Assembly: GCA_964057225.1 (NCBI GenBank)
Contig: OZ059900.1
Location: forward strand, 12,648,001 to 12,712,000
DNA from: Auanema rhodensis
Lineage: Eukaryota > Animalia > Nematoda
Length of the DNA: 64,000 nucleotides
Direction of reading: 5' to 3'
The translations under genes and the position numbers were made by a program. The notes below the pieces were generated by a model. The model searched no databases and was not told the DNA's origin. It worked only from the letters and a program-made list of their open reading frames with translations. Positions 3,601 to 34,903 of this stretch are shown piece after piece (position 1 is the first letter of the stretch; every line of letters starts with the position of its first letter).

Positions 3601-6600
3601 AACAGTTTTTCTGATTGAAAACATAGTTAATGGATTAAATAATTTAATTGACTGAAGAGTAATATGTTAGTTTAACCTATGTGGAGGAATTATCTATGCA
3701 ATTACTAATATTGTACTAGATATATGAACGCCCTCTCGAAACGAAATGAAACAATTTCAACAAACAACTGTCTCTTTGAGTAGCATTTTACTATAAAGAA
3801 AAGTGGAGTCTAAACACCTTATCGATCAATCTAAATGTTTTACTATATCTCGTTCATGTAAAAAACGGTAAAACTCTGAGAACTCTCAGAGAACCGTTGG
3901 TTTTTTTTAAGAGCAGCTCGTCTAGTTATTATTGGAGAGCGGTAATTTTCTTCTCGGCGGAGATGGGTGCTCTATACTTCTTAATCAGTTTCTCGAGCCC
4001 TTCTACGTCTATCAGTGCCATGCCACCAACCAAGTCAACGTACTTCAATAATTCAAGAGCAGGAATTTTTACAAATTTCTTCGACATAGAATTTTGTTTC
4101 CTGGCCATATCTGAAATGAGTAGAAATTAAGACAATCATGGCTCTACACCGGATTTGTACCAGTGAGTGTAGTTTGCCTCAGATTTGCAATCCTGGTACT
4201 ACACCACTTGACTATTCCGGTGTTTTTTTTTCGGTTGTAAACAAATGCATTTGGCCATGACAGTAACAATTCATATAGTTTTTAATTCACTTTAAGAATA
4301 TGCCAGATCGTTCCATTTGGGTCGCCGCGGATTCTAAGTCACTGGACGCCCAAAAACATTACGAAAAAAAAGAGTATAGATTTATATAAAGAATAAATAG
4401 ATTGTACTTTTATAGTGAAAAAAGGCAGAAAAGGATTTAGAATACAAAGGTTAATTAACTACAAGATTATAGTTATAGTATAAATGATAAAGATAAACGA
4501 ATGAACTGTTATGCTTTTAAAGCTCATGCTTATATACTATTACAACCTCTATTTTTTTAAACGCCTCTCTACTGACGTGCCCTTAGAGTATGCTTATTTC
4601 TTATAATCGAGAAAAAATCGCGCTATGCGTTCTCTTTAGCAGCAGTTTACTGCAATGCATGAAGCATCTCGTAAAATATTCTTTAATTGAATTATAGTTT
4701 TATTATATTCAACAAGATGAATATCTTCATCAAGTTCACAAATCAGTTGAACAGACAACAGTTTTTCTGATTGAAAACATAGTTAATGGATTAAATAATT
4801 TAATTGATTGAAGAGTAATATGTTAGTTTAACCTATGTGGAGGAATTATCTATGCAATTACTAATATTGTACTAGATATATGAACGCCCTCTCGAAACGA
4901 AATGAAACAATTTCAACAAACAACTGTCTCTTTGAGTAGCATTTTACTATAAAGAAAAGTGGAGTCTAAACACCTTATCGATCAATCTAAATGTTTTACT
5001 ATATCTCGTTCATGTAAAAAACGGTAAAACTCTGAGAACTCTCAGAGAACCTTTCGTTTTTTTGAAGAGCAGCTCGTCTAGTTATTAATTAATATTAATT
5101 CACTTTAAGAATATGCCAGATCGTTCCATTTGGGTTGCCGCGGATTCTAAGTCACTGGACGCCCAAAAACATTACGAAAGAAAAGAGTATAGATTTATAT
5201 AAAGAATAAATAGATTGTATTTTTATAGTGAAAAAAGGCAGAAAAGGATTTAGAATACAAAGGTTAATTAACTACAAGATTATAGTTATAGTATAAATGA
5301 TAAAGATAAACGAATGAACTGTTATGCTTTTAAAGCTCATGCTTATATACTATTACAACCTCTATTTTTTTAAACGCCTCTCTACTGACGTGCCCTTAGA
5401 GTATGCTTATTTCTTATAATCGAGAAAAAATCGCGCTATGCGTTCTCTTTAGCAGCAGTTTACTGCAATGCATGAAGCATCTCGTAAAATATTCTTTAAT
5501 TGAATTATAGTTTTATTACATTCAACAAGATGAATATCTTCATCAAGTTCACAAATCAGTTGAACAGACAACAGTTTTTCTGATTGAAAACATAGTTAAT
5601 GGATTAAATAATTTAATTGACTGAAGAGTAATATGTTAGTTTAACCTATGTGGAGGAATTATCTATGCAATTACTAATATTGTACTAGATATATGAACGC
5701 CCTCTCGAAACGAAATGAAACAATTTCAACAAACAACTGTCTCTTTGAGTAGCATTTTGCTATAAAGAAAAGTGGAGTCTAAACACCTTATCGATCAATC
5801 TAAATGTTTTACTATATCTCGTTCATGTAAAAAACGGTAAAACTCTGAGAACTCTCAGAGAACCTTTCGTTTTTTTGAAGAGCAGCTCGTCTAGTTATTA
5901 ATTAATATTAATTCACTTTAAGAATATGCCAGATCGTTCCATTTGGGTTGCCGCGGATTCTAAGTCACTGGACGCCCAAAAACATTACGAAAGAAAAGAG
6001 TATAGATTTATATAAAGAATAAATAGATTGTACTTTTATAGTGAAAAAAGGCAGAAAAGGATTTAGAATACAAAGGTTAATTAACTACAAGATTATAGTT
6101 ATAGTATAAATGATAAAGATAAACGAATGAACTGTTATGCTTTTAAAGCTCATGCTTATATACTATTACAACCTCTATTTTTTTAAACGCCTCTCTACTG
6201 ACGTGCCCTTAGAGTATGCTTATTTCTTATAATCGAGAAAAAATCGCGCTATGCGTTCTCTTTAGCAGCAGTTTACTGCAATGCATGAAGCATCTCGTAA
6301 AATATTCTTTAATTGAATTATAGTTTTATTATATTCAACAAGATGAATATCTTCATCAAGTTCACAAATCAGTTGAACAGACAACAGTTTTTCTGATTGA
6401 AAACATAGTTAATGGATTAAATAATTTAATTGACTGAAGAGTAATATGTTAGTTTAACCTATGTGGAGGAATTATCTATGCAATTACTAATATTGTACTA
6501 GATATATGAACGCCTTCTCGAAACGAAATGAAACAATTTCAACAAACAACTGTCTCTTTGAGTAGCATTTTACTATAAAGAAAAGTGGAGTCTAAACACC

Positions 6601-12944: not shown

Positions 12945-15141
12945 ATGGATGACCCACAGTTGGATAGGCTGAATTATTGCATCAAATGCCAAAAGTTTTT
13001 TAAGAATAATGATAAAACGGAGCACTGTTGTGTAAGCGTTACTTGTTTTTTTCTTAAATTTTTTTTTAGCTCTTCTCATTTGTTTCTTCTAATAAAGACG
13101 ATGAACAAAAGTTCAAACAAAAAACGTTTTTGGCTATCCGACACGAGTTGTATGAAACAGAAAGATCATATTTAAATTTTTTAAAAGTTTTGGAAGAGGT
13201 TTGTCTTTTTTTTCTTGTTTATCCTTAACGATGAAGAATATTTTCAAGCTATTTTTTGTTCCACTATCAATGTCTACTCTATGTAGTGAAAAAGAAGCTT
13301 TATCAATTTTTACTGGTCTCCCATCAATAATTGGCATAAGCAAGGTTTTATAAAAATAGTTTAGCAGCTAAAAAAATGCTCAACATGTTTTTGTTGCAGA
13401 TGATGCTCAATGAAATTGAAAGTGCTGCAGGCATTCAATCAATTTTTAATGTTTTTTCTCCGTATCTAAAGCTATATTCAACCTATGCTTGTAATTATTC
13501 TACTTCTCAAAAACATTTCCTTGTTAGTTTAAGTAAAATTTCAATAGAGTGCTAATCTGTTTTATAAAGAAATTGATGTCGAAGCCTAAATTCAGGCGTT
13601 TCATCGAACAACTGGAATCTGATCCTCGTTGCAATTCAATCAAGTTAGCTGGACTACTCATTATGCCTATCCAACGAATTTCGAGGTTTTTTGGAATTTT
13701 TAAAATAGTTAAAAAGAACCATTTAGATACGAACTATTCATCAAACGTTTTTTGGAAAACAGTAACAATGAATCCGAAAGAGCGGATTTATATGGTAAGT
13801 ACCAGTTCTTCCGATTGATTTTACAATTAAAAAATAAGAAATAATTATACCATATTTACATATCAGATGTGTTGCATCAATTGCAAAAAATAAGTGAGGT
13901 TACCCAGGAATGTCTGAATGATTTTGAATTTGGTGAAAAATTATGGTTGATTCAAGAGTCGTTAGGTATGAATGAAGGCATCGTAGCACCCGGTCGGAAA
14001 TTCATCAAAGATGGATTATTGTACAAGGCATGTTAACTAGAATATAAATTAATTATTGTGTAACAGAAAGTACAAGGAAGTGATTCAAATTTTGAAGAAC
14101 GTCTATTTTGGCTGTTTAACGACTTATTGATATATGGAAAACGTCGGCTAGGTATTGGCCCGAAATACGAATGCTCTTGTATGCTTCCATTACGTCATTG
14201 TTCTTCGTTCTATGATGACCTTACGGGGACAATAAAAGTATGCTATCTACTTTCGTAGTTGAACTTTTGTCTTTTAGATTCAATGCAAATCATATCAAGT
14301 ACTACTAACTGCCGATAGCTTTGATGTACTTAAAAAATGGTTCCCTGATCTTTTTAACATATTATCATTATTTCTAGTCTTACAGGCATGAGGAATTGGA
14401 CAATGCGATACAGTCCAGTAAACTTTCTCGTTCTACGCTTCGAAAGGAAAGCAGCAAGCAACAAGTTAAAGAATTCGGGTGTGTTTTCTTATTTGAAATT
14501 TTTTCTATTATTGTTCTTAGATCACAGATTAGAAAAAAGATTACAAATCGTTTCAATCAGAAGTCATTTTTGGCACAGGATACAATTGTTCAAAAGAATA
14601 AAACGAGTGCTTTTCGAAAAAGGAAATGGGTAAGAATTACCTGAGCTTATTATACTTTGTTGTTTTTTATAGGAATCACATGTTTCAACTCCTTTAAATA
14701 AAAACGGTTGTGAATTTGCTGAAAAAAGTGAGTAAAATATTATTATATTATTTCTGTTTATTTAGTTCAAAAAACACAAGAAAGTCCAACTATCTCGCAC
14801 AGCGAAATCAAAAAATGCTTGCAGTATTCCCATAGAGAAACTGATCAGGTATTTAATAAGACAAAAGCTTTAGTTTTTCTGTGAACCATATGAAATTTTT
14901 ATTTCATATTTTATTTTTATAGAAAAACGAAATCAAAGATGAAAAACGAGAATTTATTACATATAATGGGATAACCAATGAAATATGTCAAACAAGTTCT
15001 GAATCGATTCTACAGCGATATCCTCCGAATATATCAAGTGAACCTCCGTGGTGGTTACATGATTCTACGCCAGCTGTATATTTAGAACAACAAAAGCGTG
15101 GGTTAGTAAGTAAAATTCTCGATAATTGTACGATTATGTAA
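12945..15141 (+). CDS. Dbl-family RhoGEF (DH-PH), ARHGEF39/TAG-52-like, multi-exon
   Basis: Spliced translation gives the DH motifs ELYETERSYLNFL and LLIMPIQRISRYELF, then a PH domain PGRKFIKDGLLYK...ERLFWLFNDLLIYG. It ends ...KILDNCTIM*. Confidence 0.85.
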
Positions 15142-16260: not shown

Positions 16261-18260
16261 ATGAAGGATACAACAGTAGAATTAAAAAACAATAACTCTT
16301 CTCGAGTTAGATATATTATACTTATTATCGGTTTCTTTTTTTTTAATTCATAAGTAATTTACAATTTGGACAGGAACTCTATGTATTGCTAGCATAGCTT
16401 CAAATATGATAGTATTCAACTTTACCGTCATTTGTATGACTAGTCCTAATTCTACAACACAAAGCAACTCAAACATTCATAATTTTTCACAAAAAGAAAT
16501 ATCACAACTTAATTGGTCAGTCGGGGTTGGAACATTGCTAGCCGCATGGCCATTTCATTGGTATGTGAACAACTACTTCATTACTTGATTGGTAATTAAT
16601 ACAATATTTAGGTTTTATATGAAATATGGAGCCCGTATAGTTTTTTTCATAGCAGGACTTATTTCTGCAGTTTCAACCGTATCAATCCCGTTTGTAGCTT
16701 TTAGTGATTTCTACTTATTTTTATTGGCTCGCTTCGCACAAGTTTGTTGTTTAGAAAAGTAAACAATATAAATACTTTGATTAGGGAATTTCATTTGGTG
16801 CAGACTTTGCTGCTATTGGGCTCATAGTTGTTAACTGGGCTACACTGAAACAACATGGATTTTTCATCTCCTTGCTGTCGTCTTTTTCTCAGATATCTGT
16901 GATGTTTACCATGCCATTGGCAGGCGAAGTTGATTTTTTTTTATATTCAAGAAATATATTTTTTTTTAAGTTGTGCGAGTCGAAGCTCGGATGGGAAGCT
17001 GTTTATTACATTCATGCCTTTTTGAGCATTATTCTATTCAGTGCATGGCTCATTTATTACAGGTTTAAATCATGGCTGTTATGCTAATCTTTACACCCTA
17101 AACGATGTTGTAGAAATGATCCTGCTGATCATCCAAAAATAACAGAGAAAGAACTGGGTAAAATTCATTCTGGGAAAGAGGGAACACTGGATATGGAGAT
17201 TAAAACACCTGTTAAAGTAAATATAATGCTAGTTCACAATAAACGCTATAATTTTATTTTAGGCTATTATGAGCAACATTGTCGTTTGGGCGGTCTGGCT
17301 TTCTGCTTTTGGTGAGCTATTAATGTCGCAATTCATTGTGATGTATGGATCGATATATCTTAAAGAGGTTGAGTTTTTTACAATCATATAAAGTACTGAA
17401 AACTGAATTTAGGTTTTGGGTTTTCAAGTTGCACACACAGGATATTTTGTAGCAATTCCTAGAGCCCTACATTTGGTTTTCAAAATAGTATCTGGAATTG
17501 CTTCCGATAAAATTCAATTTATCTCAGAAAAGTTAAAGATGAAAATATTTAACAGCATCGCTTTAATGGTACTAGTAGTAAACTTCTTTTTCAACTTTCA
17601 CTATTTTTTTAGGTTTCCGGATTATTCTTTTGCTTGTTAGGATTTTTGCCTAAGGAATACTCCAATTACGCGCTTGCATCTCTCCTAGCTATTGAAGTAT
17701 CTACCGGATTCATTTGCGGAGGTTTCTATAAATGTGCTACACTAGTATCGAGGTTTTATAATATTATAATATAAAAAAAAACTGTTTTTTAGGCAACACT
17801 CTCATTTTGTATTATCTCAAATTCAATTCATCAAATGTTTATCGCTATTTATTGAGCCATTGCTTGTCTACTTATTGTGCCCTGATAATACGCTCATTCA
17901 GTGGAGAATAGTATTTCTGATTCACGGTTTCTTGCTCATAGGTAGATAAATTTTTGAATGAATAAATATGTCGTTATATATTTATAAACGCATATTCATA
18001 TCAAGTCCTATTAATTTCTATTTGTATTACAGGTGGAAACGTTGTATTTTGCATATTTGCTACAGATGAACCAGCTGATTTCACAAAACCGAAAAATCAC
18101 GTGCGTGTTCCACTTGTGGATATCTCTTCAGAAAAAGATAGGTTAGTCTGCTTTCACTTTCAATGTTACGAGAAATTCAAAGAAAAAGCATGAAATTTTT
18201 TTTTCATATTTCAATGTTTTGCTAAATTTTTACAGTAATGCTATTCGCACCAACTCATGA
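16261..18260 (+). CDS. MFS transporter, nematode SLC17/anion:cation symporter type
   Basis: Spliced: SNMIVFNFTVICM, KYGARIVFFIAGLISAVST, ARFAQGISFGADFAAIG, GELCESKLGWEAVYY, GGFYKCATLVSRQHSHFV, FATDEPADFT. The last exon is slightly uncertain. Confidence 0.88.
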
Positions 18261-18855
18261 ACATCTACATCACACTAATATGAATGCATGCATAAACTCA
18301 TTTTATGATTTATGCTTCCATGATAGATTTTTCTTCTTGTAATAGAGAGTTTTTGATGTGAAACGTGTTAATATAGTTAATTATGTATTAAGTATGAGCT
18401 ACCTCAATGAAAAAATATAATTTAAATAGATAATGAATATAAAACTTGCACTAGTTTCTAATTTTTCAATACTTTTCAGACTAACTAAGTCAGCGGATGT
18501 CACCAACTAAGATAATACTATTATACACATATATATAGAAATATAAAGGCAGTGAAAATCAATGTACCTATTTTCTCTTAGAAATAAAATAGTACAAATT
18601 GGCTAGGAGTAAACATGTTTTTTCTTGTGCTTCATTATTTTTGATTCTTTTCACAAAAAATGTTGCAGATAGTTGGAAATAAAGTTTTGAAAACTAAAAC
18701 AATCCTAGTAGCAGGATGAGATATGGTAACGCTTCGATTTCAGATTTTTCAACAAAACAAACAAAGATAGATTTATTGAAAGAACAAAATTGAAAAAAGA
18801 TGATGATCATTATCAAATTCAATTGAAGATTTTCAAAACAATATAAACAGTAAAA

Positions 18856-21800
18856 TTATTTCTTTTTTGAAGATCCGATGTGATCGTTTTTTCCCTGACT
18901 GTCATGACGCTTTTTACTTGTACTACGATCTCGGCTTCGATGACGATCCTGAGCGTTTTATTAATTGAAAAAAACGAAAATAAATAAATCTCACATCAGA
19001 TGGTTTCCGTGATACATGTTCTTCTTTGTCAGTATTAGCTTTGTGTGGCTTCTCTACTGATCGATGTTGATCAGGCCGAGCGTCCTAAAAAATATATATA
19101 TATTGATAGGTTTATTATACACTAATATACTTTGCGATCTTGTTCTTTTTTCTTAGTCATATATTGATTGAAAAGGCTTTCCCGGACCTTTTCTCGCTCA
19201 TTACGCGCTTTCTCAGCCTATATATAACAATCAATGAAAAAGAATAATCTAAAATATGATACTTTTCTGATTTCACTTGGTAAGCGACTAGGTTCTCCAA
19301 ATATGCTTCTCATCCGTTCCAACGGATCCATCTCTTTTTTCCTCTCCTACAATGAAATGTTATGTAATCAAGTTTCACAAGTAATTTGAATTACTGATGA
19401 CTTGTCTATTTTCCGAGGGATGGTTTTACTAGTAGGTGTCATTGTTATGGCAGACGACGGCTTTTCCTACAATATCAATTTTATAAAAAAAATTTGAAAA
19501 AAACTAACTATCTTTTTTTTATCGGGTTTGTCACTTTTAAGCGGAGTGAAAGAAGATTTTTTGCTTTTTTCCAAATCTTCGGAATAAGGTTTTTTCCTTT
19601 TTTCTGTCTCATCAACGTGAGTTTTTTTGTCCTAAATTAGATGAAGGTTTGGTGTTTATTCAATTCACAAACCTTCTTTTTCTCCATTTTTTCGTCTTTA
19701 CTTGCGAGTTTATGAGTACTGAAGGTAGACACATCCTTGTGATCTTTCTTTTCAAGTCTTTCACTTCGTTCTAACTTATCTCGTTTATCACGCTTTTCCA
19801 GTCTGTCAGTCTTTTCTTGTTTTTCCAATTTATCATTTCTATCTTTTCTGCTGGCAGTATCCTTCTCGTTGAGTTTCTCTTTTCGTTCCAGCTTATCCAT
19901 TTTTTCGGGCTTTTCCAGCTTGCCTTCTGTTCTTGATGTCTTCTCCTTTCCTGTAGATATATCTCTTCTCTCCACTCGTTTCTGTTTTTCCTGTTTCTCC
20001 AAGCGTTCCATCTTTTCTAACTTCTTGGCTTTAGACTTTTCTGTTTTATCAGTTTTTTCCGGGGAATCCATTGCCTCCTTTTCTTTTTTTTCGTGTCGTT
20101 CTGATATCTCAGTTTTAGCATATTTATGCTTATCCGGTTTTTCACAAGTGTTCCTCTCAAGCTTTTCGCTTTTTGACAGTTTATCAACCTTGTCCTTTTT
20201 GATAAATTTCTCGATCTTCTCTGTGTGCTCAAGCTTGCCGACACTTTCGGATTTATCCATTTTATCCTTCTTTTCTAACTTTTCCGATTTTTCCTTTTTA
20301 TCCTTTTCTGATTTGTCCAACTTCTCCGCTGATCCATGAATTTCTTTTCTGTTGTACTTCTCCTTCCGATTTCTTTCCAGCTTGTCACGTTCTCGTTTGT
20401 CGGCTTGATCCAATCTTTCCTGCTTCTCCGTTTTTTTCCAAACTTTTTCTGTATTGCTTCGTTCATCTTTTTTCAACTCGAAATCCTTTTGTACTATAGG
20501 CTCAAAACCAATCTGAAACAGCACATGTTTAAAAAAACATAAATAGTGAAAATAACCTTTTCCAATGATTTCCTCTTATCAAAAGGTTGAATAGCCGAAC
20601 TCTTCGTTTTAATGGAATTTTGATCAGTATATTTCTTGGGTAGATCGAACAAATTATTTTGAGATTGTAGATCTGTTGATTTTCCTTTGGGTCGATCTTC
20701 GTCAAGTTTGAGTTTGTCTTTCGACCTGTTTCTCTCTTTCTGTGAGATCATTTGAGTATCTTTTTGTTTGCAGCAGCTATCCATTTTGGGAGAAATATAT
20801 GTTGATGAAACAGATGATGACATCTTCCGTTGTCCTTCATTGACGATCATCGGAGACTTTTGAGATATGATAGCTGTGGATTTAACAAGACAATCATTAT
20901 CGCCCGATTTCGAAAAACACGAATCTGTGAAAGAATGATGTGGTTGTGAGGCTAATGCAGATGATGTGGTAGGCTTTTGACCATCATTAACAATTAAACG
21001 ATGTTGCCTAAATAATGAGGATGCTGATGCTGATGCTGATGAAGAAGTTGAAGGTGAGGTCGTTAATGGTTGACTGTTAATCGATTGTTCATTGACTTTG
21101 CGATGCGGCTTTAGTGAAGATGAGTAAGATGTAGTTGGTTTTTGTCCATCGTTCACTATTATACCTCCTTTATATGAAGAAGGTGATGAATATGACGATT
21201 GCTGACTTATTGGGCTTTGACCATGAGTTTCAAGACTTGACCCTGATGGGTGAAGTTTTGATAATGTATGTGTATCACCTGATAACTTTGTCTCTTCAGG
21301 TTTCGAAATACTATGGGGAGAATTTGTTTCTTGAACTTTGAATAAACTTCGACGTTTTTGTAAATGCAAAGTTTGTCGATCCAGCGAATTTAGATTATCG
21401 GAGGCATTACATGTGTCAAGGGACTGACCGAGCACGTTCCGATTACGATGACTGTCTTTTCGCTTAGGAATATCAATAGGTGTTAAAACCCATTTAATAT
21501 TTTTTGGCGTGTCGTCTTTTTTAATCTCCGAAAGACCAACATGTTGATGATGCAAAGCTGAATTATTCTTCTCAGAAATCTCTCCAACTGTGCTAGAGGT
21601 AAGAGGTTGTTCGACCGATTTTGATGCACAGATATTTGCTGAAGGAGAATCTTGAGAGTACAAGATTCTAGAAGCTTGACTCGACATTGGAGAAGACGTC
21701 TTCAGTTGAACATAATCAGTTTTATGAGCATCATGCTGAAGTGAGGCAAAGATATAAATAAGAAATTAATCAAAATGAAAAATCTTACTTTGGGTTTTGC

Positions 21801-24800
21801 AGGATTAAGAGAGGGTACGAATGAGGAAGAAGTCGGTTTTGGTTCTGAAATAGTTGGCATCCATGATCGAGAAGGTGCTGCTGGAATGCTTTCACTCAAG
21901 CGTTTTTTCAATCGTTCTTTGTATTCATCAACAGATAAACGCTTAATTTCCTGAACAAAAGTTTCTATAAAACATATTCTTTAATCAACGAACCTTAGGT
22001 TTTTCATCGTTTCTCTCGAGGGGAGATTGTTTTTGATCGATTTTTTTTGATTGAATTTCTATAAATAAAGTTTTAGTTGAGAATTCAATTAGAAACGTCA
22101 CCTGAAGTCGAAACAGAAATAGTCTTGGCTTTTTTACGCGAGAGTCTCTGCTTTTTGGCTCCCTTTTTAGAGAAACGCTTTGATTTTCTTTTCCGTGAAC
22201 CTTTCAAAGATCTGGGCTTTTTCGAAGTTGTTTCTTTTTTAATTTTGGCTGCACGTTTCATTTTCTTATGCCGGAGCTTTATTTCATAGTCTTGAAGTTT
22301 TGTGTACTCATCAGTCGTAAGACATCGTTTTGGTAAGACTTTAGGTTGCCGGGGTCTTGGCCACAAAGGATACGCTTTACGCAACGAAGAAAAATTCGAG
22401 TTCTTCTCCCTCTTTACAAATGATTTTTTTCGACCTATTCTGGGGTCTTTTGGCTTTTGAGACAAAGAATCCATAGGTATCGTGAATGGAGATTTGAATT
22501 TTGGTGAATCCGTTGATAGAGAACGTCCCATGGTTTTAGAAGCATTCTTTACGCTCACGTCTTCATTAACAGAAGGCATTGAAACACTCCGGCTTAATAT
22601 TTTTTCAGCTTCATTTTTTACACGGAGCGGTGGAGGCATAGGGATTTTGAATGCCCCGCTGTCAGAAGATGTATTTTGAGTTTCGGTGCAACCTGGAAAA
22701 TAAATTTAAAAAAAAACTGAAAACTAGTACTGAACTATTACCTCTTTTAAGCACATCTTTCTCCTTTGAGGCCACAGGGTTTTGCCCGAGAATTGTTTTG
22801 TTTTTCTCTCGCTCTGATAATTGGCGTGCTAGCTGTAGCTTTGGTTCACTTTTTTCTGGCGTTGTCGATACAGGAATTTGTATCGAGTCCTTTGTCGAGG
22901 TGGAAGATTCTTCTTTTATCTTTTGCTTCAAAATAGCTTTCTCCTTTAAGCATTCTGCTGTACGAACAACCGTTCGTTTAGCTAGTTCTTTTTCTTGTAA
23001 TCCAACATACTCATCTGTCGTCAAACGCCTTCGTTTAGTCTTTATTTTTGGTAGAATAATAAGACTGTAGTTTAAAAGAGCTTCGGAATCTATTTTCAAA
23101 TCGTATTTCCTTAGTCGTGGAAGAGACTGTTTCCCTTCGATAACCTTTTTGGTTTTCCTTCTTGTTTTTGTGAGTTTGCTTGATGCAGATTCGTTAGCTG
23201 ACTGTACGAGTGTTTCGTCCGATTGGTGTTCGATTCCAACTTTTTTGATATTTTTTCCTGTTTTATCTCGAACTAAATGACGTTTGTTTGGATTTGGTGA
23301 AGGTGATGGAACTGCTGTATCTGTTGATATGTTCGGGAGAGAAAAATCTTGAATTGATGCCGATGTCGAGTCAAACATGCCAATAGGACCACTGCTACCT
23401 TTGTGTAAGGAAATATCATCTGTTGCTAATGATATCATTTCAGCCACCTTTCCTGCATTGTCGTTTGCCACGGTTTTCGATTTCTCTGTTTTATCACGGG
23501 AAGGATCATTGGCTTGACGAATGGTTCTCTCTCTTTTTAATTCCAGTTTCTTTTTTGTCAGAACTTCAGCATTAAGAATTGCTTTAAGTCTGCTTCTCAC
23601 AGCAATATTATTTATAAATTGCATGCTATTGATTTTGCGAGAAACCTTCACAGTAGAAACATCACAGGGCTTTTTCCTCAAAATTGTTTTTAATTCCATA
23701 GGATTGACTCTGGATGGTGGATATCGTTTCGATAGTTTTGCTGTGTTCATATTGAACATTACACGCTTCGAATAATTTGAACCAAAACTTTTTCTACTTT
23801 TTTTGGGAAGCTTCGAAATTGAATGACCTTTTCGACAAATCATTTTCAAATAATTGTCTTTGGTTTTTAATATAGGCTGAAGTTTTCGAGCAGATTTTGT
23901 ATTGCGATCAGACTTCTCTTTAAAAAAAAAAAGTATAAACGTCATATTACTTCTCGTACCTGATCGTATTAGCAACTTTGAATGCTCAGGGTCGTTATTA
24001 GAAACTTGGAAACTTGGCCGGGAACGTCGATAGTCACTCGATGGAGTACCCTTCGTGGTAGACTTTGAGGTTTCTGAATGAGTAGAAAATAAAAAATAAT
24101 ATAAATTTCATCTTCTCACCCTCATAATACTTGCCAGCTGAACTCTTCAAGCAATCAGGAGAACTTTCATGAAGACTGAGAATTCGGCGTTTGATGCTAC
24201 ATCCAGATTGATTATCAGTTAGTTTTCTCTTTGCAGGTTGAGATCGACTTCTAACATCTTGACTTATGAAAGATGCTGAATTGCTGTCCGATCCCAAAGA
24301 TGACAATGATAAGGTACGATGAGCGGTTCCAAATTTAAACGTCGGTCGCTCAGTACCACTGCGAAAACTGCCAGAACCTCTACTCTGGTCGTTCCTTGAA
24401 GTTGACTTCTCCAAATTAACACACTCAGAAAAATATGATCTTCTCGAATGTTTTTCTCTTACAGGCTAGAAAATTTAGATTGCAAAATCAATTCGAAAAA
24501 AATCAGCAAGTAAAATACCTCTTTTTGTTTCCGTGTATCTTTCTCTTTTGTTGAAGATGTCCGTAACTTTTCTTTCTTACGCAGAAACATAGCATTCAGT
24601 TTTTCAATTCTCTCAGTTTCACGATATTTTAATTTTTCAACAAAATCATCAAGAGTAATTCTTTTAATTGGCTAAAAGAAGAAATTAAATAACTACTCAA
24701 TTCTTCAAATACCTTTATAGTGATTCTCCGTTTTTCAATGGTACTTCCAGGGGAGGAAAGTGATGCCAACGCCGAAGAAAACAAAGAATTTGAAGTAGTA

Positions 24801-27800
24801 TTAGGTCTGTTGCTTTGTAGTTCTTTTCTGCGCTGCTCCAAATACTGAGAGACTGTAAGACGTTTGACGATCTTAAAATTCGAAAAACAGTTGGTAAAAA
24901 AATAACAATTTACTTTCTCTTTTTCTTGAGCTTTTTTATATAAAGAGTCAAAGAGCGATGCAGGTTGAGGAATTGTTGACCGTTGTTTGTTGAGTATCTG
25001 CTTATGTTTATTATACTTTAAGTAAGCTTCCCTCCTTGTTTTATGATTGAACCAGGAATCAGTGGTCTTTCGAGAATTCTAAAAAATGTAAATAAATAAA
25101 AAATGATATCAGTTAACTGATTGAAACCATTTCGTGTTTTTTAATCCGAAGAGAAAACAATCGACAAATGTCTTGAGCAGATGAAAGCTCCCTTTCCTTT
25201 TTCAGATTTTCCTCGCGTTCAAGAACTTTGTCCATCCATTCGTCAGTGGTTATGGGCGCTGAGATTATCTTTGGTCCAGAATTCTATCAATAACAAAAAA
25301 TACTATTTATGGAAGATTTAAATCTTACTTCTCTTTTCTTTCGAATATTTTCTAAAGTTTCACCGCAAAATATTCTAGAACGATTACGAAAGAAACGCGA
25401 TCTAACTTTTTTTTCATGTTTATGGATCAATTTTATTGCTTTTCGTTGCAGTCTCCTCATATCCATCAGCTCATCAGTGGTGAGCAAGCGGCCTTCATAC
25501 TGAAAAAAAAATTAAAACTGAATTTAAAAAGAAAAAAACCTTTCGAACTATTGAACTCAAATATTTTCTATGTAAAATTCTTCTTTTAAGTCGAAATGTA
25601 CGTGATGGTAAATAGCGACGAGGCTAAAATAAAATTAGTAACAACATGATTCTATTAGCTTACATAGTTGTACACATTTTCCGCTATATACAAATGTAGC
25701 GCAATCATACGTATTTTTTTAGCGAATAAAATTGCTGCAATCATGACTTCATCAGCCGGTTCTTGAATTTTTTCATGTGAACCCTGAAATGCTCATTAAT
25801 AGTGAAACTAAAATGTTTAGTAGTAGCACCTTTGATGCACCTCCACTTTGTTTATCATTGCTCAAACTTTTTTCATTCAACTTATTAATACGTTCAGTCT
25901 CAAGCCTCACCCAATTCACATCATATAATTTTCGTTTGATCTAAATAATTCATGGGCTAAGTTCATAAAATTTGTAAACTAACATGACAAATCAGGGAAG
26001 CTTTTTCATTATCTGATAGTTCAGATTTCCATATGCTCGTGATTCTTTTAGCAATCGATAGAATTGCCGGTTGCTCATAATTTAACTGTCGATTCATCCA
26101 AACGGCACGTGAAATACGTGGGCGTTTTCTTTTCTCTTTTTTGTTATGACGATTAATATGAGTTTTTTTGACCACAGACTTCTTTTTTCCTTTAGTACAT
26201 TCATAGTCAACATTATCAGGATTCAGCATTTTCTTAAAATTCTTTTCTTTCTTAATTTTATCTGAAACAAATTTTTTTTTTGAATTGAGATTTTTTCTCA
26301 AACCAGTAATGTTAGTGATTTTCATCTGACGTTTTTCACTTTTAACTGTTCGTTTTCGAATCCTTTCTTTGTGCTTGACTTTCGATATTTCATTGCTAGA
26401 CCGTTTGCGGTGAGACCTGTGAAGCTTTCTCAGCGTTTCGGTAGAACTTCTATTCGAGGTATTCATCTGTTAAATAAATGAAATAATCGCTTTCATTCAA
26501 GAAACCTACTTTGCTTTTCTTTTGTTTACGATATTTTTCGCCAAGTTCGCTATATTTTTCATATTTTTGTACAGCAATAGTTCGGTTTATGGGATACTCG
26601 GAAAGCTTTTGAGCTAACGAACAAATTTTTGAAGTAAACGAATCACGTCGTTTTTCAATAATTTGTCGTTCTTGTAAATCAGCTTGTTGATCTGTCGTTA
26701 ATCGTTGATGGAAAATCAAATGCTGCAAACCAAACTTAAAGATAAATATTACATGTTAACGATTCACGTTTTCTGGGGTGAGCTCGACAGAGCTTTGCAT
26801 ATCCTTCCAAGCTTCAAGAATTTTCTTGAATTCTTCTCGGGACATCTTCATTTTGATCTAAGTACCCATACAAGTATATAAATATAAATATATATATATA
26901 CTTACCACTAATTTTCTCATTGATTCTTTATTTTCTTTTCCTTCAGACATTAAAGAAACTTCAGTATTGGGGAATTGTTTTCGCATATATTTATAGCGTA
27001 ACACAAGCCACTCAACAGCTGGAACTGTGCGTTCAATCTAGAACAAAAGTCATATGCTCAATTTTCTTATTTCTTCAACTTACTTTGAAACATTTGGGAG
27101 CTGATATTTTTTTTTCTTCTGGTTCTTCAAAGATTATGGACTTTTTTGATTTTTCCCCACAAAAACCTCTCGCATATTTCAATTTCTTAGAATTTATTCC
27201 AATTTTGATCTAAAACGTTTCCGAAATAATTTAGATATTCAAAAAAAAATACCCTAATGAGTTGTTTTTTTGGTCGATATCGTCTATCCTTAACTTTATC
27301 TTTTTTAAACACACGGCATATCTAGGAGAGAAAAGTATAAATATATATAACATTCGAACTCTCTTACGTATATTTTTTTTCTTGACAATTGCTTATTGTG
27401 TATATTAACTTGAAATGGGAGATAGTATTTCCAAGATATATGTCCAGCGGAATCTCCATTCTCAATCGCGGGAAGAAGCTGAAAATGAGAAGTGTAAAAA
27501 AGTTTTAAAAGTCAATAATACTTTAATAACTCTGTGTCCTTGGAGTTCAAGACGTTTACGTTCATCAATAGGTCGATAATTCATTTGTCTCCGTTTCCGT
27601 TCAAACCACTTTTTAATTGGTATACCTCCGGCAAGCTACAAACTTCAATATAATATGAAGATAAAGTGATTCCTCACCTGTATAATTCCATGATTGATTC
27701 TACATTTCATCGCTTTTGCATCTGAGTTCTTTTTCAGAATAGAAACAGCTTCTTCTGTCCTGTCTAAAATATATTTTTCAATTATTTTATGAACATTAAA

Positions 27801-30800
27801 AACAAACGTTTCGAGAAAGTACGAGAAGCTAGAGTTTTGATAGAACTATCTGGATTCAAATCTGCTTTTTTGCCGCAGTTTCCCATTTTAGCATTTGTTG
27901 TAAATGATTTAATGTTTGAAATGCACCTAATTTGTTTTAAACGTTCACGTTGCGAACCGAGCGTACCACGTAAAAATTGCTGTAAATAAGAAGTATAGTA
28001 ACTTATAAATGTAAAAAATTTCATACTTTTTTCACTTTCCAATTAAAGTGAGAAGCAATTGTTGAAAAACTACGATATTCTTCCACCCGCTGAAAAGACA
28101 ATCGTGGAAAAGAAGCAGATCGCCCTGATGAAAGTGATTTCACTTTAATTGGGACTGATGCAGATCTACAGTAGGGTTCCGGTAAATTCGCTATTATGGT
28201 CCGACTATCGTTTTGAGAACGTCTTCGGCTGCGTGATTTTCTAGGATTTTGGTAAAATGCCTGAAATTCTTGAAATATGTGCATTTTTCAAATATAAATA
28301 CCTGAAGAAACTCAATATTGTTGAACAAATATGATTCGCGGCCTACTGGCGTAAGAGCGAAACACGAAGATATTTTTTTTTGTGAAATGGGAGTATTTTT
28401 GAAAGCACGAAAACTTTTCAAATTTGGTTGGCCTGAGCTTTTTCTTATTTTGCACGTTGGTGGTGCAGTTTGGAATTTCTCTCTTATTCTTGCCTCGTTA
28501 AACAAAATTTGTTTATTTGCGGTTCTTGAAGATTCTGAATTTTTCCAAAACTGTTCTTTTGAGGATTTTGCTCTTTTTAGTGTTTTCTGACTCTCCTCGT
28601 CAAGACATAAAAGTTTCGAAGTAGACGCAGTAGAATGCGGCAGAGTGCCTCGATTACACTTTTCATTTCCGACATGTGAGATTGTCGATTTCGATGTAGA
28701 ACTCTGGTTCTGATAACCAATATTTTTGCAAGGGTCATTTAGATGACGACCTCGAAGATTGTCGAAAGCAGCTTTCCGATTCTGAAATACCATTATGTAA
28801 ATTATCTTAACCAAATACTTACTTCTCTTTGTTTCGTTGATGTCTTCTTCGACTCTGCATTAGAGTAAAACGAACATTGGCATTTTGTACATTTAAAAAT
28901 CCGAACTGCGCTAATATTCTCTCTGGGTGTTTGAGTTGGGCATGTTTTTGAATAAGTTATATTTAAATCAGCGCTGGTAGAACGCAAACTGATTGGATGC
29001 TTTGTTGTTTCTGTTAGTTGAGCACTAACAGATCGTATCTCTTTATCCTTTGGACTCTGGAATAATGGAATGCTACCGAATAGAATAATTAAAAACCTGT
29101 TTAAAACGAGCAGGAAGTTCAGGTATCTTGAAAACTGAATCATCGTTTGCTTTCTCATCACATCTTTTTGACAATAATTTGAGATCAGAAGCTTGAGAGA
29201 TTGGCAGAGATTCTTTATTAGTTGAAGTAGATATAGTAGGAGGCTGCTTAGCGTTCGAAACACAAGGTGAATAAGCCGTTGACTTATACTTCTTAATTAC
29301 TGAAATTGTGATTAAATACGAATGTAATATACACCAAAAATTATTACTACTATACGGCTTGAAACATGACAAACCTTGCATTGCACCTTTTTCTATCTTA
29401 AAGCAACAGGAAGACATTTTTTTCTGCTTTTTATATCTTCGGAGAATGATTCTGAAAATAAAACCATTAATTGTAGATGACTTTTTATTTTGAGGAAAAA
29501 CGTACCTTTGATTCCTTAATTTATTTACTGCCAAACCTAAACGACGTGAAGTCTTCATGATGTGGCATAAACTCCATGGAGTTAATAACCGTTTATGATG
29601 TTTAATACAAAATGATTTACGACGAAGACGCTCTAACTTCAAATTATTATTATAGCAAGCTCCATTTCTCCACCGGTGAACCATGAGCTTTTTTACATGA
29701 TTAGAGCCAATATATACACTAGGTTTTTTCGATTTCGAAACAGTATATTTACCAGTTTTCTCTTTACTGGTTAGACGCACGACATCTTCCTTTTTGTGCT
29801 TTTTCTCCTTCTAAAAAGAAATTAAATAATTCACGACAGATGATACTCACTGGATTATTCTTTCCACGGCGGCTGTACCGGACCAAACCCTGAAAAAATT
29901 TGTATTCTACATTTATACTCAAAACCCTTACTGATGTTGGAGATTTGAAGCGTACTCGTTTATATTTTGAAATCTGTAAAATTCTCATTATTATTAAAAT
30001 ATTATATTTAAAACCCAAACCAGAAATAAGCGAACTGCTTTTTTCTTTTTTCGCGCTATGGAATTTGTTGAAGCTTTATCTGTGCACTTATTACAAGCCT
30101 GTTTGTTATCTGATTCCGATACATTTAATTTCTTGGAAGTTCTCTGAAAATATATTGATATCGGAAGTATTATAAACTTTTCAGGTTATGCTGAACTTTA
30201 GAAAGAGCGAAATAATAATAACTCTGAAAGAAATTTTACGCTAAACAGATGAGTACAGCAATTTTGGTAGTAATATTGTATTTGTTAATGTTCACAACAG
30301 AGAATTGAAGAATAAAAGCTATGAAATACCTTATTGTTTGTCTCACTAGCTACTTTGCTCATTTCCTTTCTTTCCGTATTTTCATTCAATTTCGCTTTAG
30401 CAACAACCTTCGCTTGTAGATCATTTCTTACTTTTTTTTCTATTATATTTACAGGAAGCCATAATGACTGAAAAAACGAATGTAACTTTAAATTCAACAT
30501 TAAACTTACCAGTCTTCTACATGCTGAAGCTAACATATGTGCTTTTTTATGAAAAATTGTAACCCCTATGGCAGAAACATGATTAGTTTCAACTTGAGAA
30601 ACGTGTGCTCCTTTAAGAACATTATGAATATGACATAACGATACAAACGAAAACCTGACTCAGAGTTCCAGCAATGTAGAGTAGAATCCGAAGAACCACA
30701 CCACACAAACTTGGAATCTGGTGAAAAACATCCAGTCAACTTGTAATGCTATAATTTTGAACAATATCAACCGATATTAACAAAAATCAGACTAACGCGA

Positions 30801-31920
30801 TCATTTTTATGTCCTTCTAATATACCTTTGACTTTACCATTATACGAGTCGATTACTCTACATAATAGAAAATAATTAATTTCTACAACATTAAATTGTA
30901 CCTCATATAGCTACCATTTGTATTTATCAAAATGAACTTGCCATTCGGTGATACTTGAATATTGGTCCAATCCGCGCGATTATCTCGCTCGTGTTTGAAA
31001 GATAGGAAGGGACCCTAAAATAAAAGCTTAGACACACTCTTAAGATTTCAACCAACATCTTCGATTTTTCGTACATCATAGAGCTTGATGGCATCTCTAT
31101 TGATAGCTGTTGCAATAATATTACCAACAGAATCAAATGTAGCAATGGAATTAGCTTTAGTTCTCAATACACCCTATACAAATAATTTATAAAAATTGTA
31201 GTATTTTGTTTTTTCACAAACCCAAGCTTTTGGTGACCTGTAATCCCACAAACGCACTGTTTGATCCAAAGAAGAAGTTAAAAAACCTTGATATAAAGCA
31301 TTTTTAGCCAGTGATGTCACTCTATAAAAACTTTTATATAAAAAACAAAAAATCGATTACTGAATAAACAAAATAAATCAATAACTAAATGAAAAATTTT
31401 TCAACCTTTTGCTATGTCCTTTGTAATAACGTATATAACTGTTTTTGTGTAAATCCAAGTAGCGCAAAGCATCTGATAAAATAAAACTTTTTGGAATAAT
31501 ATTATATGAAACATACCATCAACCTTTGTGGAGTTATGAACAGCAAAGTTTTTGTCTTCGGCAAAACGAATTATGTCGACTCCGTACTTTTTGCTATGCA
31601 GATTCTGTATAAAAAAATAGAAACAAAATATTTGCGTTCAAATTAACCACATATTCCTCTGACTCTTTAACAGCATTCAGGTTGTAAACAGTTACACTTT
31701 CATGGTCGTTAGCAGACAATATATAATTGCCGTCTGGACTTATATCCAAGGATTTTATTATACGAGGTCTCTCAACTTCATAAGATTTTATACATACAAG
31801 ATTTCCTAGCTCTTTAGGATCGATCCTGACCTAAGTATTTAATTGATTGCATACGAAGATAATAACATTCAAACAAACCTTGTCAGGCTGCAAAGTTTTA
31901 CTTAAAGCATTCGTTGACAT
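18856..31920 (-). CDS. Giant (~3,500 aa) protein: N-terminal WDR82/Swd2-like WD40 propeller fused to a very long K/R/S-rich low-complexity extension
   Basis: Exons 31920-30450 encode LHSKKYGVDIIRF, DALRYLDLHKNSYIRYYKGHSKRV, TSSLDQTVRLWDYR, IKLYDVRKIEDGPF, FSPDSKFVWCGSSDSTLHCWNSESG and MLASACRRLSLWLP, colinear with WDR82/Swd2. I followed one reading frame through ~51 GT-AG introns to TAA at 18856. It links the ORF-track fragments at 29073, 28802, 28194, 28021, 27782, 26450, 25963, 25287, 24629, 24034, 22662, 22085, 21702, 20494 and 19637. Confidence 0.75.
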
Positions 31921-31964
31921 TACCACTTATTCGTTAATAACATATTCGGGAAATCCAAAAAGTA

Positions 31965-31969
<5 letters not shown>

Positions 31970-31996
<27 letters not shown>
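31970..31996. repeat. (TA)n microsatellite
   Basis: Uninterrupted TA run upstream of the WDR82-like ATG. Confidence 0.9.
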
Positions 31997-32344
31997 GATA
32001 AGATTACGATAAAAACCGAAAAATGATCAGGCAAAAATTATAGAAAGTAAAAATATCAAAGAGAAATATGTAAAAAAAAGTAAATAAAAACTTTATTGAT
32101 ATTTTACTTTCAAATGCATAAAATTGGAACTTCTAAATCAATAAAATTTCATATATAGGTGACACATGAAACAATGTGAAATTAATTGAAATCAATAGGA
32201 TATAAAAAATAATGAAGCGTTTTCACCTTTAAAGTATTACTGATAGTACAAGAAAGTATTCGAAGGAACACCAAAAATGGCGTGGGCGCTAAAATGTTAC
32301 GCGACGCGGATGAAAGTAATGCAACGCAGGCCACAACGCTTGTG

Positions 32345-32360
32345 CATTGGAGCGCGCTTG
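32345..32360. promoter_or_regulatory. CATTGGAGCGCGCTTG motif in a CG-rich patch ~430 bp upstream of the WDR82-like gene
   Basis: Resembles the CAaTGGAGCGCG(C/T)TTG germline-promoter motif described for C. elegans (from memory). A related GCGCTCCATTG lies at 60325. Confidence 0.4.
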
Positions 32361-33347
32361 TTATTGTGCCTTTCAGATAATTTTGAATTTACACTGAATG
32401 TTTTCAAAAAAATGTAAATGGGAAAACTTCTGATGTAGACGTGATTCATGTTGAATCTCAGACGCTCATCATGTAATTATGTCAAATCACTAACATGTTA
32501 GCTGATTTTGAGAGGTGAAGTGCTAGTGAATAAAACAATAGAGTGGGCACACATTTTCACAACACTTTCATATCAAAAAAATGTTAAAATAGAAAAGTTA
32601 AAATTCTGATTCCTATTTGAAAATTAGTTTGCATGGGTAATAAAATTATTCTTAATAGTGTAAACAATACCCAAAATATAGTTACAAAAACGAAATAATT
32701 TATTGACAAAGGAAAGTGATATATGCACACGGTTAACTAACTAAGTTTTGAAAAGCAGAAAATTATTAGAATTGTGAAATACAAAAAAAATCATATTGTA
32801 CTAAAGTTTTCAGATTTGCTTAAAAATTAGATTAATTTAATGTTTCAATTTTCCATTCAGAAAGTTCACTGTAAACTGATAAAAACTAAACTAAAGAAAG
32901 GATCATTATTGTTTAATTTTTTTCCAAATCCCAAACTTTTTCAAACCTTACCAGTTACCCAAAACAGAAAATAGAAAGAGCTATAACTTAATCCTATTTT
33001 AAAGTTTATCTAAAAAAAATTAAAGTACAACACTTTCCTGGTTATTTTTTATACTTTTCACTATTGAAACAATTTTCTGTTTTTTGTAAAGCATTCGAAT
33101 CGTATATGATTGTTTGCAGAATTATAATGAATTAAAACAAACGGTGAATATATTTTGTTATTTATTGGAAACTGAGCGAATGAAAATTATTATTGTATAA
33201 CAATTACAAATGAATACTGGTGTTAAATAAGTTTAAAATGAATTCCTATAGATCACGTTTGTCACAAAAGTTGCCTTCAAAATAGTTTAAATAATATACG
33301 GCAACAATTTAGTATTAAAGGGAATTGTTTTTAAGTTTGTATTATGA

Positions 33348-34903
33348 TTAGTTTTCATTTTGCTTCGTCTGTTCTTCTCGCGAAAATATGATTCTTTCTT
33401 GTTCAGGAAACTTATACAGAGTTGATATTTCAATTTCAGTATTCATTTCTTCTTTTCGGATCCAGCGGCGGTATAAACGACTAAAAATATAATTAAATGA
33501 AGTCAATTGTTATTCTGGTTGGAATACCTGAACACGCAGTTGCGAAATATTTTAAGAAACTCAGCGCGTATGTTATGATTGAAGTAAGCATAGCTTACTG
33601 GATTTAAACAGGCAGAAAACATTGCAATAACGTGACAACATGCAAAAACTGAGACGTAAAACTGAGGGACAAGTTCATACGTATTAACCTGTAAATATCG
33701 ATATAATTACAAAAAAAGTTTGAAAACTTTACTAAATGAAAAACATTCAGTGGCAGCCAAGCAATGGCAAAAATTCCTACAATTGACATCAAAAGAAAAT
33801 GTGTACGTCTTTGACGTTCAGCAATTGATCTAAATAAATAAGTTATTATGCGTCAATTTTGACATATTGTATTTTACCTTCGTCTTTCCGATAATGAACT
33901 CAGAACGGATCGATTGGAAAAAGTAGAAAAATCTCGATTAGTACTCCTGAGTTTCATTTTATTGGCTATTCGAGTATATGCAAAAACTAAAGACATAAGC
34001 GGGAAAGCATATTGTACGGCAAGAACAGAAACAGTATAAGTTCGTTTTGAAATAATCATCTGAATAGAAACTTTAGTTTTGAAGATTAATATTGTATTAT
34101 ACTTTTTCCCAAATTGAATTCTGTTCATGACAGATTTGTAAAACAATTTTGCATATGGGATCTTCGTATAGAATGTTAACATCAGAGGCAATTAACAAAG
34201 GTACTGCCAAGATTAGTGATATAACCCATATCAAAAAGAAAAAAACTATAGAAAGTCGTTGTTGACGTTCTCTTTTTGTGGGAAAAATGATAAGAACATA
34301 TCTGAAAACGTTTTCAATGTTACAAAATCAGAGCAAATATATATTTACCTGTCCAGGGCTATAGCTGTAATAGAAAACGTAGAGAGAAAGACGTTAAAAC
34401 CTTGCATAGATCCCACAATCTTACACAAAGTTGTGCCAAAAGGCCAGAACATATAACGAATAGTATACAATGTGATCGGTGCGGTTACAGTGCATACCTG
34501 AAGTCAAAATATTCAAGAGTTGCTAAACTTCAACTTTTTAATAAGTTTGTTGCAGTTCTCTGTCACGTAAACCCACAAAAAAGTCTGAAAGTGCCAGATT
34601 GAGTATGAAAAAATTCCGGGTTGTTCGCATATTTGAATTTTGTAGAACAACATAAATAGTCAACGCATTTCCCAAAGTGCCAAAAAGAATGACTGAAAAG
34701 TACGCAGCTGTTATGAAATATCCAGCCTATAATAAATTATTCATATACTGTTTCTATCTCTTTAATATAAAGAAGCTCCTGTATACCGTTGTTGGTGAAT
34801 GTTCAGTTCCATTTAGTATCACTTCATCGCGATAATAGCTGTTTATTTGATTGAATACATCTTTAAATTCACTACAAGAATCATTTCCCCACTGAGCACT
34901 CAT
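33348..34903 (-). CDS. npr-11: Neuropeptide Y/F-type GPCR, NPR-11 orthologue
   Basis: Spliced: GYFITAAYFSVILFGTLGN, MRTTRNFFILNLALSDFFVC, DRYVLIIFPTKRERQQ, ICHEQNSIWEKMIISKRTYT, NPVSYAYFNHNIR. These closely match my recollection of C. elegans NPR-11. Confidence 0.88.

Follow-up and report, generated by a model that had tools for sequence, protein, structure and literature searches.

Gene structure at the locus

The DNA analysed here is a window of 64,000 nucleotides from the nematode Auanema rhodensis (GenBank assembly GCA_964057225.1, contig OZ059900.1, positions 12,648,001 to 12,712,000 of the forward strand), and all positions given below are those of the window. Its minus strand holds a coding region (18856–31920) in which a WD40 propeller of the WDR82/Swd2 type is followed, in the same reading frame, by a tail of ~3,210 residues. 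A first-pass annotation, made from the sequence alone, had placed the ATG at 31920, the end of the last propeller exon (AAG|GTATTT) at 30330, the start of exon 12 at 30143 and the TAA at 18858–18856; these coordinates proved exact. Between the ATG and the terminal TAA the model is a single open frame of 51 exons and 3,539 codons. Spliced transcript contigs back every exon from 26100 upwards, whereas those below 26100 are predicted. Splice junctions were read by hand and then checked against the arithmetic of the contigs. All 50 introns are of the GT..AG type and 40–84 nt long, except for one of 186 nt. The full model, including the predicted part, has one in-frame stop (the terminal one) versus 171 and 339 in the other two frames. 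An AATAAA is present at 18777–18772, 3' of the TAA, and the open reading frames (ORFs) of at least 130 aa in the 64-kb window all stem from this gene or its antisense strand.

The propeller is encoded by exons 1–11 up to the motif SLWLP (aa 1–327, 30453–31920). Exon 11, the last propeller exon (30467–30330), opens with SLWLP and has no stop before its donor; the rest of it (aa 328–368, 30330–30452) encodes a 41-residue K/E-rich continuation beyond the normal end of WDR82. The intron that follows (30144–30329) is the 186-nt one, and it forms the critical junction between propeller and tail. If this intron were retained, the frame would hit a stop after 14 codons. When folded it showed no unusual structure (z −0.38), and a scan of 18500–32500 against Rfam, the junction intron included, matched no RNA family. 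The splice model offers a candidate in-frame microexon of 27 nt within the intron (30197–30223, minus strand), which would encode SYYYFALSK between a TTTCAG acceptor and a GT donor; it is skipped in the contigs of all three sequencing runs used here.

Below 26100 the model has 20 introns of 40–53 nt, all in phase, and the architecture of this part is predicted only. The last six introns, after exon 45, would carry the frame beyond a stop at 19637 to the terminal TAA, and exons 45–51 (aa 3078–3539, 18856–20512) would encode an extremely charged C-terminal region rich in K, E, R and D. The largest exon contains a 42-nt in-frame GT..AG segment (23918–23959, minus strand), which scores like the confirmed introns and has a T-rich hydrophobic translation. 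It is probably an unseen intron, in which case the protein would lose 14 residues.

Transcript evidence for the propeller–tail join

The transcript data consist of assembled contigs from three runs (X1–X3) of one study, and 55% of the words sampled from 26100–32000 were present in the runs. Each run yielded one contig on this region (10,537, 10,611 and 10,546 nt, respectively) with zero mismatches to the window. The contigs show 29 CT..AC joints in 26100–32000, which correspond to GT..AG on the minus strand; together with one joint that was dropped at a masked repeat they account for the 30 introns of the model. Fifteen joints are listed explicitly, and the remaining 14 match in number the 14 introns read by hand between 31920 and 29811. 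Two anchor points were available: contig position 1347 corresponds to 29810, with exons upstream of it totalling 1,305 nt, and contig position 4317 corresponds to 26100, with an exonic length from the ATG of 4,276 nt after removal of a 48-nt intron in the masked repeat. Both agree on a 5' offset of 41 nt, and the contigs include ~38–41 nt of 5' untranslated region. Because retention of the junction intron would shift the contig offset by 186, this intron has been spliced out. A (TA)n microsatellite at 31956–32000, masked in the read data, adjoins the 5' ends of the contigs ~38–41 nt upstream of the ATG.

The depth of coverage gives the same picture. Values in the depth table are the product of contig depth and covered fraction, and the covered length per bin fits the exon model within 3 nt in 30 of 30 bins; the sole 3-nt misfit placed the donor of intron 2 at 31647. 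The two bins that flank the junction (30040–30236 and 30237–30433) are each covered over 104 of 197 nt, and the 186-nt intron is therefore absent. In the 1,425 codons supported by transcripts the reading frame is free of stops, against 76 and 140 in the two alternatives. The dominant assembled transcript thus has propeller and tail joined by a real splice.

In principle, the locus could make two products, that is, a propeller protein through intron retention or polyadenylation within the 186-nt intron and a tail protein through a start or trans-splicing at exon 12, with the fused mRNA as a minor read-through form. The length of the junction intron, the longest in the gene against 40–84 nt elsewhere, would fit this arrangement, as would the acceptor at 30143, which is a TTTTCAG of the type also used in trans-splicing; moreover, rare variants get dropped from contigs. 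However, a single unbroken contig spans the junction and 29 other joints in each of the three runs, no contig matched the intron and there was no report of loose ends, although an alternative form, if abundant, would normally leave the contig broken. In addition, the junction intron contains no AATAAA, and the last propeller exon already holds the 41 in-frame residues past the normal WDR82 end. We consider two separate products very unlikely.

An artefact, by chimeric assembly of neighbouring transcripts or misassembly of the genome, is extremely improbable. The contigs are de Bruijn assemblies from one study rather than single molecules, but three samples agree on the joints and match the window without mismatch, the junction itself is an in-phase, canonical GT..AG splice and not an overlap of untranslated regions, and the depth bins follow the exon model to within a few nucleotides. 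The proposal of the first-pass annotation that the propeller is in frame with a basic tail of ~3,200 aa is thus borne out by spliced contigs of three runs that cross 30330/30143. Its further claim that all downstream exons join in phase through short introns is confirmed by the contigs down to 26100 and stays a prediction below that position.

Identity and divergence of the propeller

WDR82 acts as an adaptor alongside RNA polymerase II, whose Ser5-phosphorylated CTD it binds, and is a subunit of the COMPASS, PNUTS-PP1 and Restrictor (ZC3H4) complexes. WDR82 genes were retrieved with a degenerate DNA pattern taken from two motifs of the window exons (KKYGVD, 93 nt, YIRY), which yielded 40 metagenome loci. 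The ORFs at these loci (313–330 aa) are 38–47% identical to the spliced propeller over ~288 residues, with E-values down to 3e-93. Among solved structures, the best match to one of these ORFs (L035; 313 aa, 42% identical to the propeller) is S. pombe SPAC824.04 (Swd2.2). A profile search with L035 returned 2,582 proteins; the best 120 bear the name WD repeat-containing protein 82 or COMPASS component SWD2, are all canonical animal WDR82 and include no nematode copies.

Against the same best 120 of 2,582, propeller residues ~39–327 are 36–46% identical over ~288 residues in BLASTP, the best match having an E-value of 2e-95 and a score of 280 bits. For scale, a canonical WDR82 compared with WDR5 reaches 103 bits, and compared with S. 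pombe Swd2.2 it reaches 165 bits. The alignment spans canonical residues 24–309 of 313 and is colinear, with two gap positions and all blades present, and the family signatures SKKYGVD, YIRY.KGH, GPF.SF and ASAC...WLP are kept. Single propeller exons gave weak WD40 matches in Pfam, and generic WD40 matches or none against solved structures, the queries being too short. The comparison supports the assignment of the propeller as a complete, colinear, seven-bladed member of the WDR82/Swd2 family, in agreement with the first-pass description of a complete but divergent WDR82-like propeller.

The annotation had also held that WDR82/Swd2 normally ends soon after the WLP motif. This is the case for 114 of the 116 canonical proteins that carry the motif among the best 120 of 2,582, in which W[LIVM]P is followed by 3–12 residues to the end. 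The longest extension after WLP among the 120 is 112 residues, compared with ~3,210 in the window protein. Canonical members are 312–335 aa long, and the window protein falls outside the stand-alone size of ~310–340 aa that marks the family. Its propeller is also far more divergent than any canonical animal sequence with which it was compared. At the columns that are at least 95% identical among 100 canonical WDR82 proteins (n = 123), the propeller keeps 75 residues and has 13 conservative and 35 radical changes; with 35 of 123 positions radically changed, canonical partner binding cannot be assumed. In S. pombe WDR82, F187 and F237 form the pocket that binds the DPR motif of partner proteins (PMC13710762). 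The former corresponds to the F of GPFLSF and is kept, and the latter is conservatively replaced by the Y of VIDSYNG. The pocket residues suggest that the hub function survives. Altered partners are suggested by the large number of changes where canonical sequences hardly vary.

Divergent second copies of WDR82 have precedents. S. pombe Swd2.2 is part of the PP1-PNUTS module (PMC13710762), and Swd2.2-type paralogues thus show that a divergent second WDR82 copy can be devoted to a complex other than COMPASS. C. elegans has two WDR82 homologues, swd-2.1 and swd-2.2 (PMC3187824), which makes a specialised second or third copy plausible. In contrast to the window protein, S. pombe Swd2.2 is a stand-alone propeller, and the chain with a solved structure has 341 aa. 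The C. elegans protein swd-2.2 has about the same length.

Composition of the tail and searches for homologues

The tail that follows the propeller is basic, with 15% K, 12% S and 8% R (24% K+R, or 757 K+R versus 368 D+E). It has low hydropathy along its whole length, with the minimum in the last ~540 residues. Overall, it is a lysine- and serine-rich segment without recognisable domains and is probably disordered. A Pfam search of 18 tail exons gave nothing above threshold, although a domain split over small exons could escape detection. In the same 18 exons no TFIIS-N-like domain was matched, and the N-terminus of the protein is taken by the propeller; N-SET, SET and post-SET domains had no Pfam match in the C-terminal ~460 K/E/R/D-rich residues, and a regular-expression scan of the tail detected no CCCH or C2H2 patterns. 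According to tandem-repeat and self-BLAST scans, the tail did not arise through recent duplications.

The largest tail exon (443 aa) was compared by phmmer with 1.84 billion representative proteins and gave zero matches, not even to itself, as the organism is absent from that set. Exon 41 (196 aa) was examined in two ways: in a word-indexed search nothing scored among 76 candidates, and an atlas search returned neighbours at the chance level only (0.79). The length limits of the protein searches would hide any long nematode orthologue.

One alternative is that the tail arose recently by stop loss and exonisation, is under weak constraint and has little function of its own, the protein working simply as a divergent WDR82. 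The two tail exons without a homologue, with neighbours in the atlas at chance level, and the charged, low-complexity composition without any domain are in line with this. Against it, ~3,200 codons that are open over 40 in-phase exons at 36% GC are very unlikely to last without selection, and two different short motifs repeat in the tail far above chance. We regard an extension of this kind as unlikely.

Two further features of the tail-coding DNA were observed. A perfect GATGCT repeat of 3.7 copies at 21020–21041, in the Ser/Ala-rich part of exon 44, is a possible length-polymorphic coding site. On the plus strand, antisense ORFs at 19869–20339 (156 aa) and 22651–23070 (139 aa) face K/E-rich exons; these long ORFs seem to result from the sense-strand codon composition and not to be genes.

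Short motifs in the tail

Pattern scans of the tail revealed two repeated motifs. The first, of the form basic-[LI][TS][TLV]D[DEQ][YWFLQ] and referred to here as the LTTDEY-type motif, is present in seven copies at aa 1255, 1576, 1638, 1806, 2318, 2536 and 2635 (21921–26701, minus strand), and K or R precedes it in six of the seven. The pattern with a DE core was observed six times, where 0.02 was expected from 500 shuffles; the copy at aa 1255 (LTTDQQ) fits only the looser pattern. The second, [ILM]IVN[DE]GQ[KR], occurs three times at intervals of ~50 residues (aa 2876, 2931 and 2980; 20827–21162, minus strand) in a Ser/Thr-rich stretch. Both recur far above chance, and the first-pass description of the tail as motif-rich was well founded.

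Candidate docking motifs were also found. Exon 13, a microexon of 42 nt (aa 410–423, 29932–29973, minus strand), encodes KRVRF (aa 414–418), which fits the strict PP1-type RVxF pattern, and LV follows six residues further on, encoded in exon 14. A DPR (aa 2494–2496) and the stretch LWPRPRQPKVLP (aa 2521–2532) lie together just upstream of one LTTDEY-type copy (22331–22447, minus strand). The docking motifs of WDR82 partners have been defined as DPR, WPL/I and LI-like (PMC13710762), and LWPRPRQPKVLP is the sole stretch that, judged by eye, resembles the WPL/I as well as the LI-like types. The RVxF, the DPR and LWPRPRQPKVLP are leads only, put forward for their resemblance to docking motifs.

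A probable WDR82 hub with a built-in arm

Other eukaryotes have a small WDR82 hub, which long disordered partners with docking motifs share (PMC13710762). We consider it probable that the gene in the window combines both roles, that is, that one gene with one main assembled mRNA encodes a single nuclear protein of ~3,500 residues in which a fast-evolved WDR82 propeller hub is joined to a motif-bearing client arm. The splice join, the open frame, the propeller family and the repeated motifs of the tail are direct observations, from which we infer the role in docking. The propeller would still act as a docking hub. The tail would be its built-in client arm, with short linear motifs (the seven basic LTTDEY-type copies, the three IVNDGQK copies, the RVxF and the DPR) that recruit other factors wherever the propeller docks. 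A task that is elsewhere split between stand-alone WDR82 and the long disordered partners PNUTS, ZC3H4 and SET1 would thereby be carried out by one chain, most likely in the nucleus and tied to RNA polymerase II transcription or chromatin.

Several points weigh against this explanation. The tail exons that were tested have no detectable homologue, which leaves the conservation of the tail, and hence its function, unproven. The propeller sits on a very long branch in the tree (2.9 substitutions per site; median 0.18), and binding of canonical partners or of RNA polymerase II's carboxy-terminal domain may have been lost, judging from the changed residues. The strict RVxF pattern was observed once against 0.32 expected by shuffling, and DPR once against 0.49; neither is significant. 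For the transcript, the 3' 60% of the model relies on predicted splice sites, and below 26100 the contigs are 46–121 nt shorter than the model. This shortfall fits either contigs that end just before the 3' end or one to three unseen in-frame introns. The evidence comes from a single study and supports the join at the level of RNA rather than protein; the runs were labelled as RNA by guess alone, though spliced contigs could hardly come from DNA. The contigs also leave room for minor isoforms (propeller only via intron retention, or tail only via trans-splicing).

The known partners of WDR82 offer a second way of reading the arm. PNUTS/Ppn1/Ref2 is a long, mostly disordered scaffold with an RVxF site for PP1, and the window protein has its KRVRF-x6-LV ~90 residues past the propeller. 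It could then be the single-chain equivalent of the PNUTS–WDR82 module of the nuclear PP1 phosphatase: the propeller would be the hub, KRVRF-x6-LV in the microexon would recruit PP1, and the region with DPR and W-P together with the LTTDEY-type motifs would dock the arm onto the propeller or onto termination or chromatin factors. PNUTS is reported absent from C. elegans (PMC3814315), and a built-in PP1-targeting arm is attractive for this reason, with one motif as its basis. In contrast to PNUTS, however, no TFIIS-N-like domain or CCCH finger was detected in the window protein, it has no sequence similarity to the scaffold, and its WPL-like match is weak. We regard a single-chain PNUTS–WDR82 as distinctly unlikely. 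ZC3H4 and SET1A/B are likewise very long disordered proteins, which dock on WDR82 via DPR (PMC13710762), and the tail has one DPR; in contrast to them it lacks CCCH fingers, an RRM and a SET domain, and one DPR is at the level of chance.

None of the canonical WDR82 proteins in the comparison has this layout of a propeller with a giant tail, nor does it occur in the literature searched. No paper describing a WDR82 fusion was found in that literature, which agrees with the remark in the first-pass annotation that no such fusion was known.

Neighbouring genes

Upstream of the gene, at 33300–34900 on the minus strand, exon-sized ORFs resemble a neuropeptide receptor of the rhodopsin type whose last helix has an NP..Y-type motif. 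They are separated from the WDR82 gene by ~1.3 kb, which argues against an operon with this receptor-like gene. On the other side, and convergent with the WDR82 gene, exons at 16358–18190 (plus strand) resemble a major-facilitator-type transporter with several membrane passes, and beyond them, also convergent, exons at 13070–14260 (plus strand) resemble a RhoGEF-like protein of the DH type.

Implications for the WDR82 family

Accounts of WDR82 depict a small stand-alone hub, common to SET1/COMPASS, PNUTS-PP1 and Restrictor through short docking motifs of the long disordered partners. If the tail turns out to be unconstrained, the gene would clearly exemplify how an ancient propeller can gain a very large extension de novo. 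A transcribed fusion of the hub with a motif-bearing arm of 3,200 residues would show that one molecule can be both hub and client, and that a dedicated, non-exchangeable WDR82 complex is possible. It would also offer new candidate short linear motifs. The RVxF site, if true, would be a pointer to how PP1 is targeted to transcription in nematodes, for which PNUTS has been reported missing, and a single-chain PNUTS–WDR82, if true, would be a natural 'Rosetta stone' fusion that reveals the missing PP1-targeting scaffold of nematodes.

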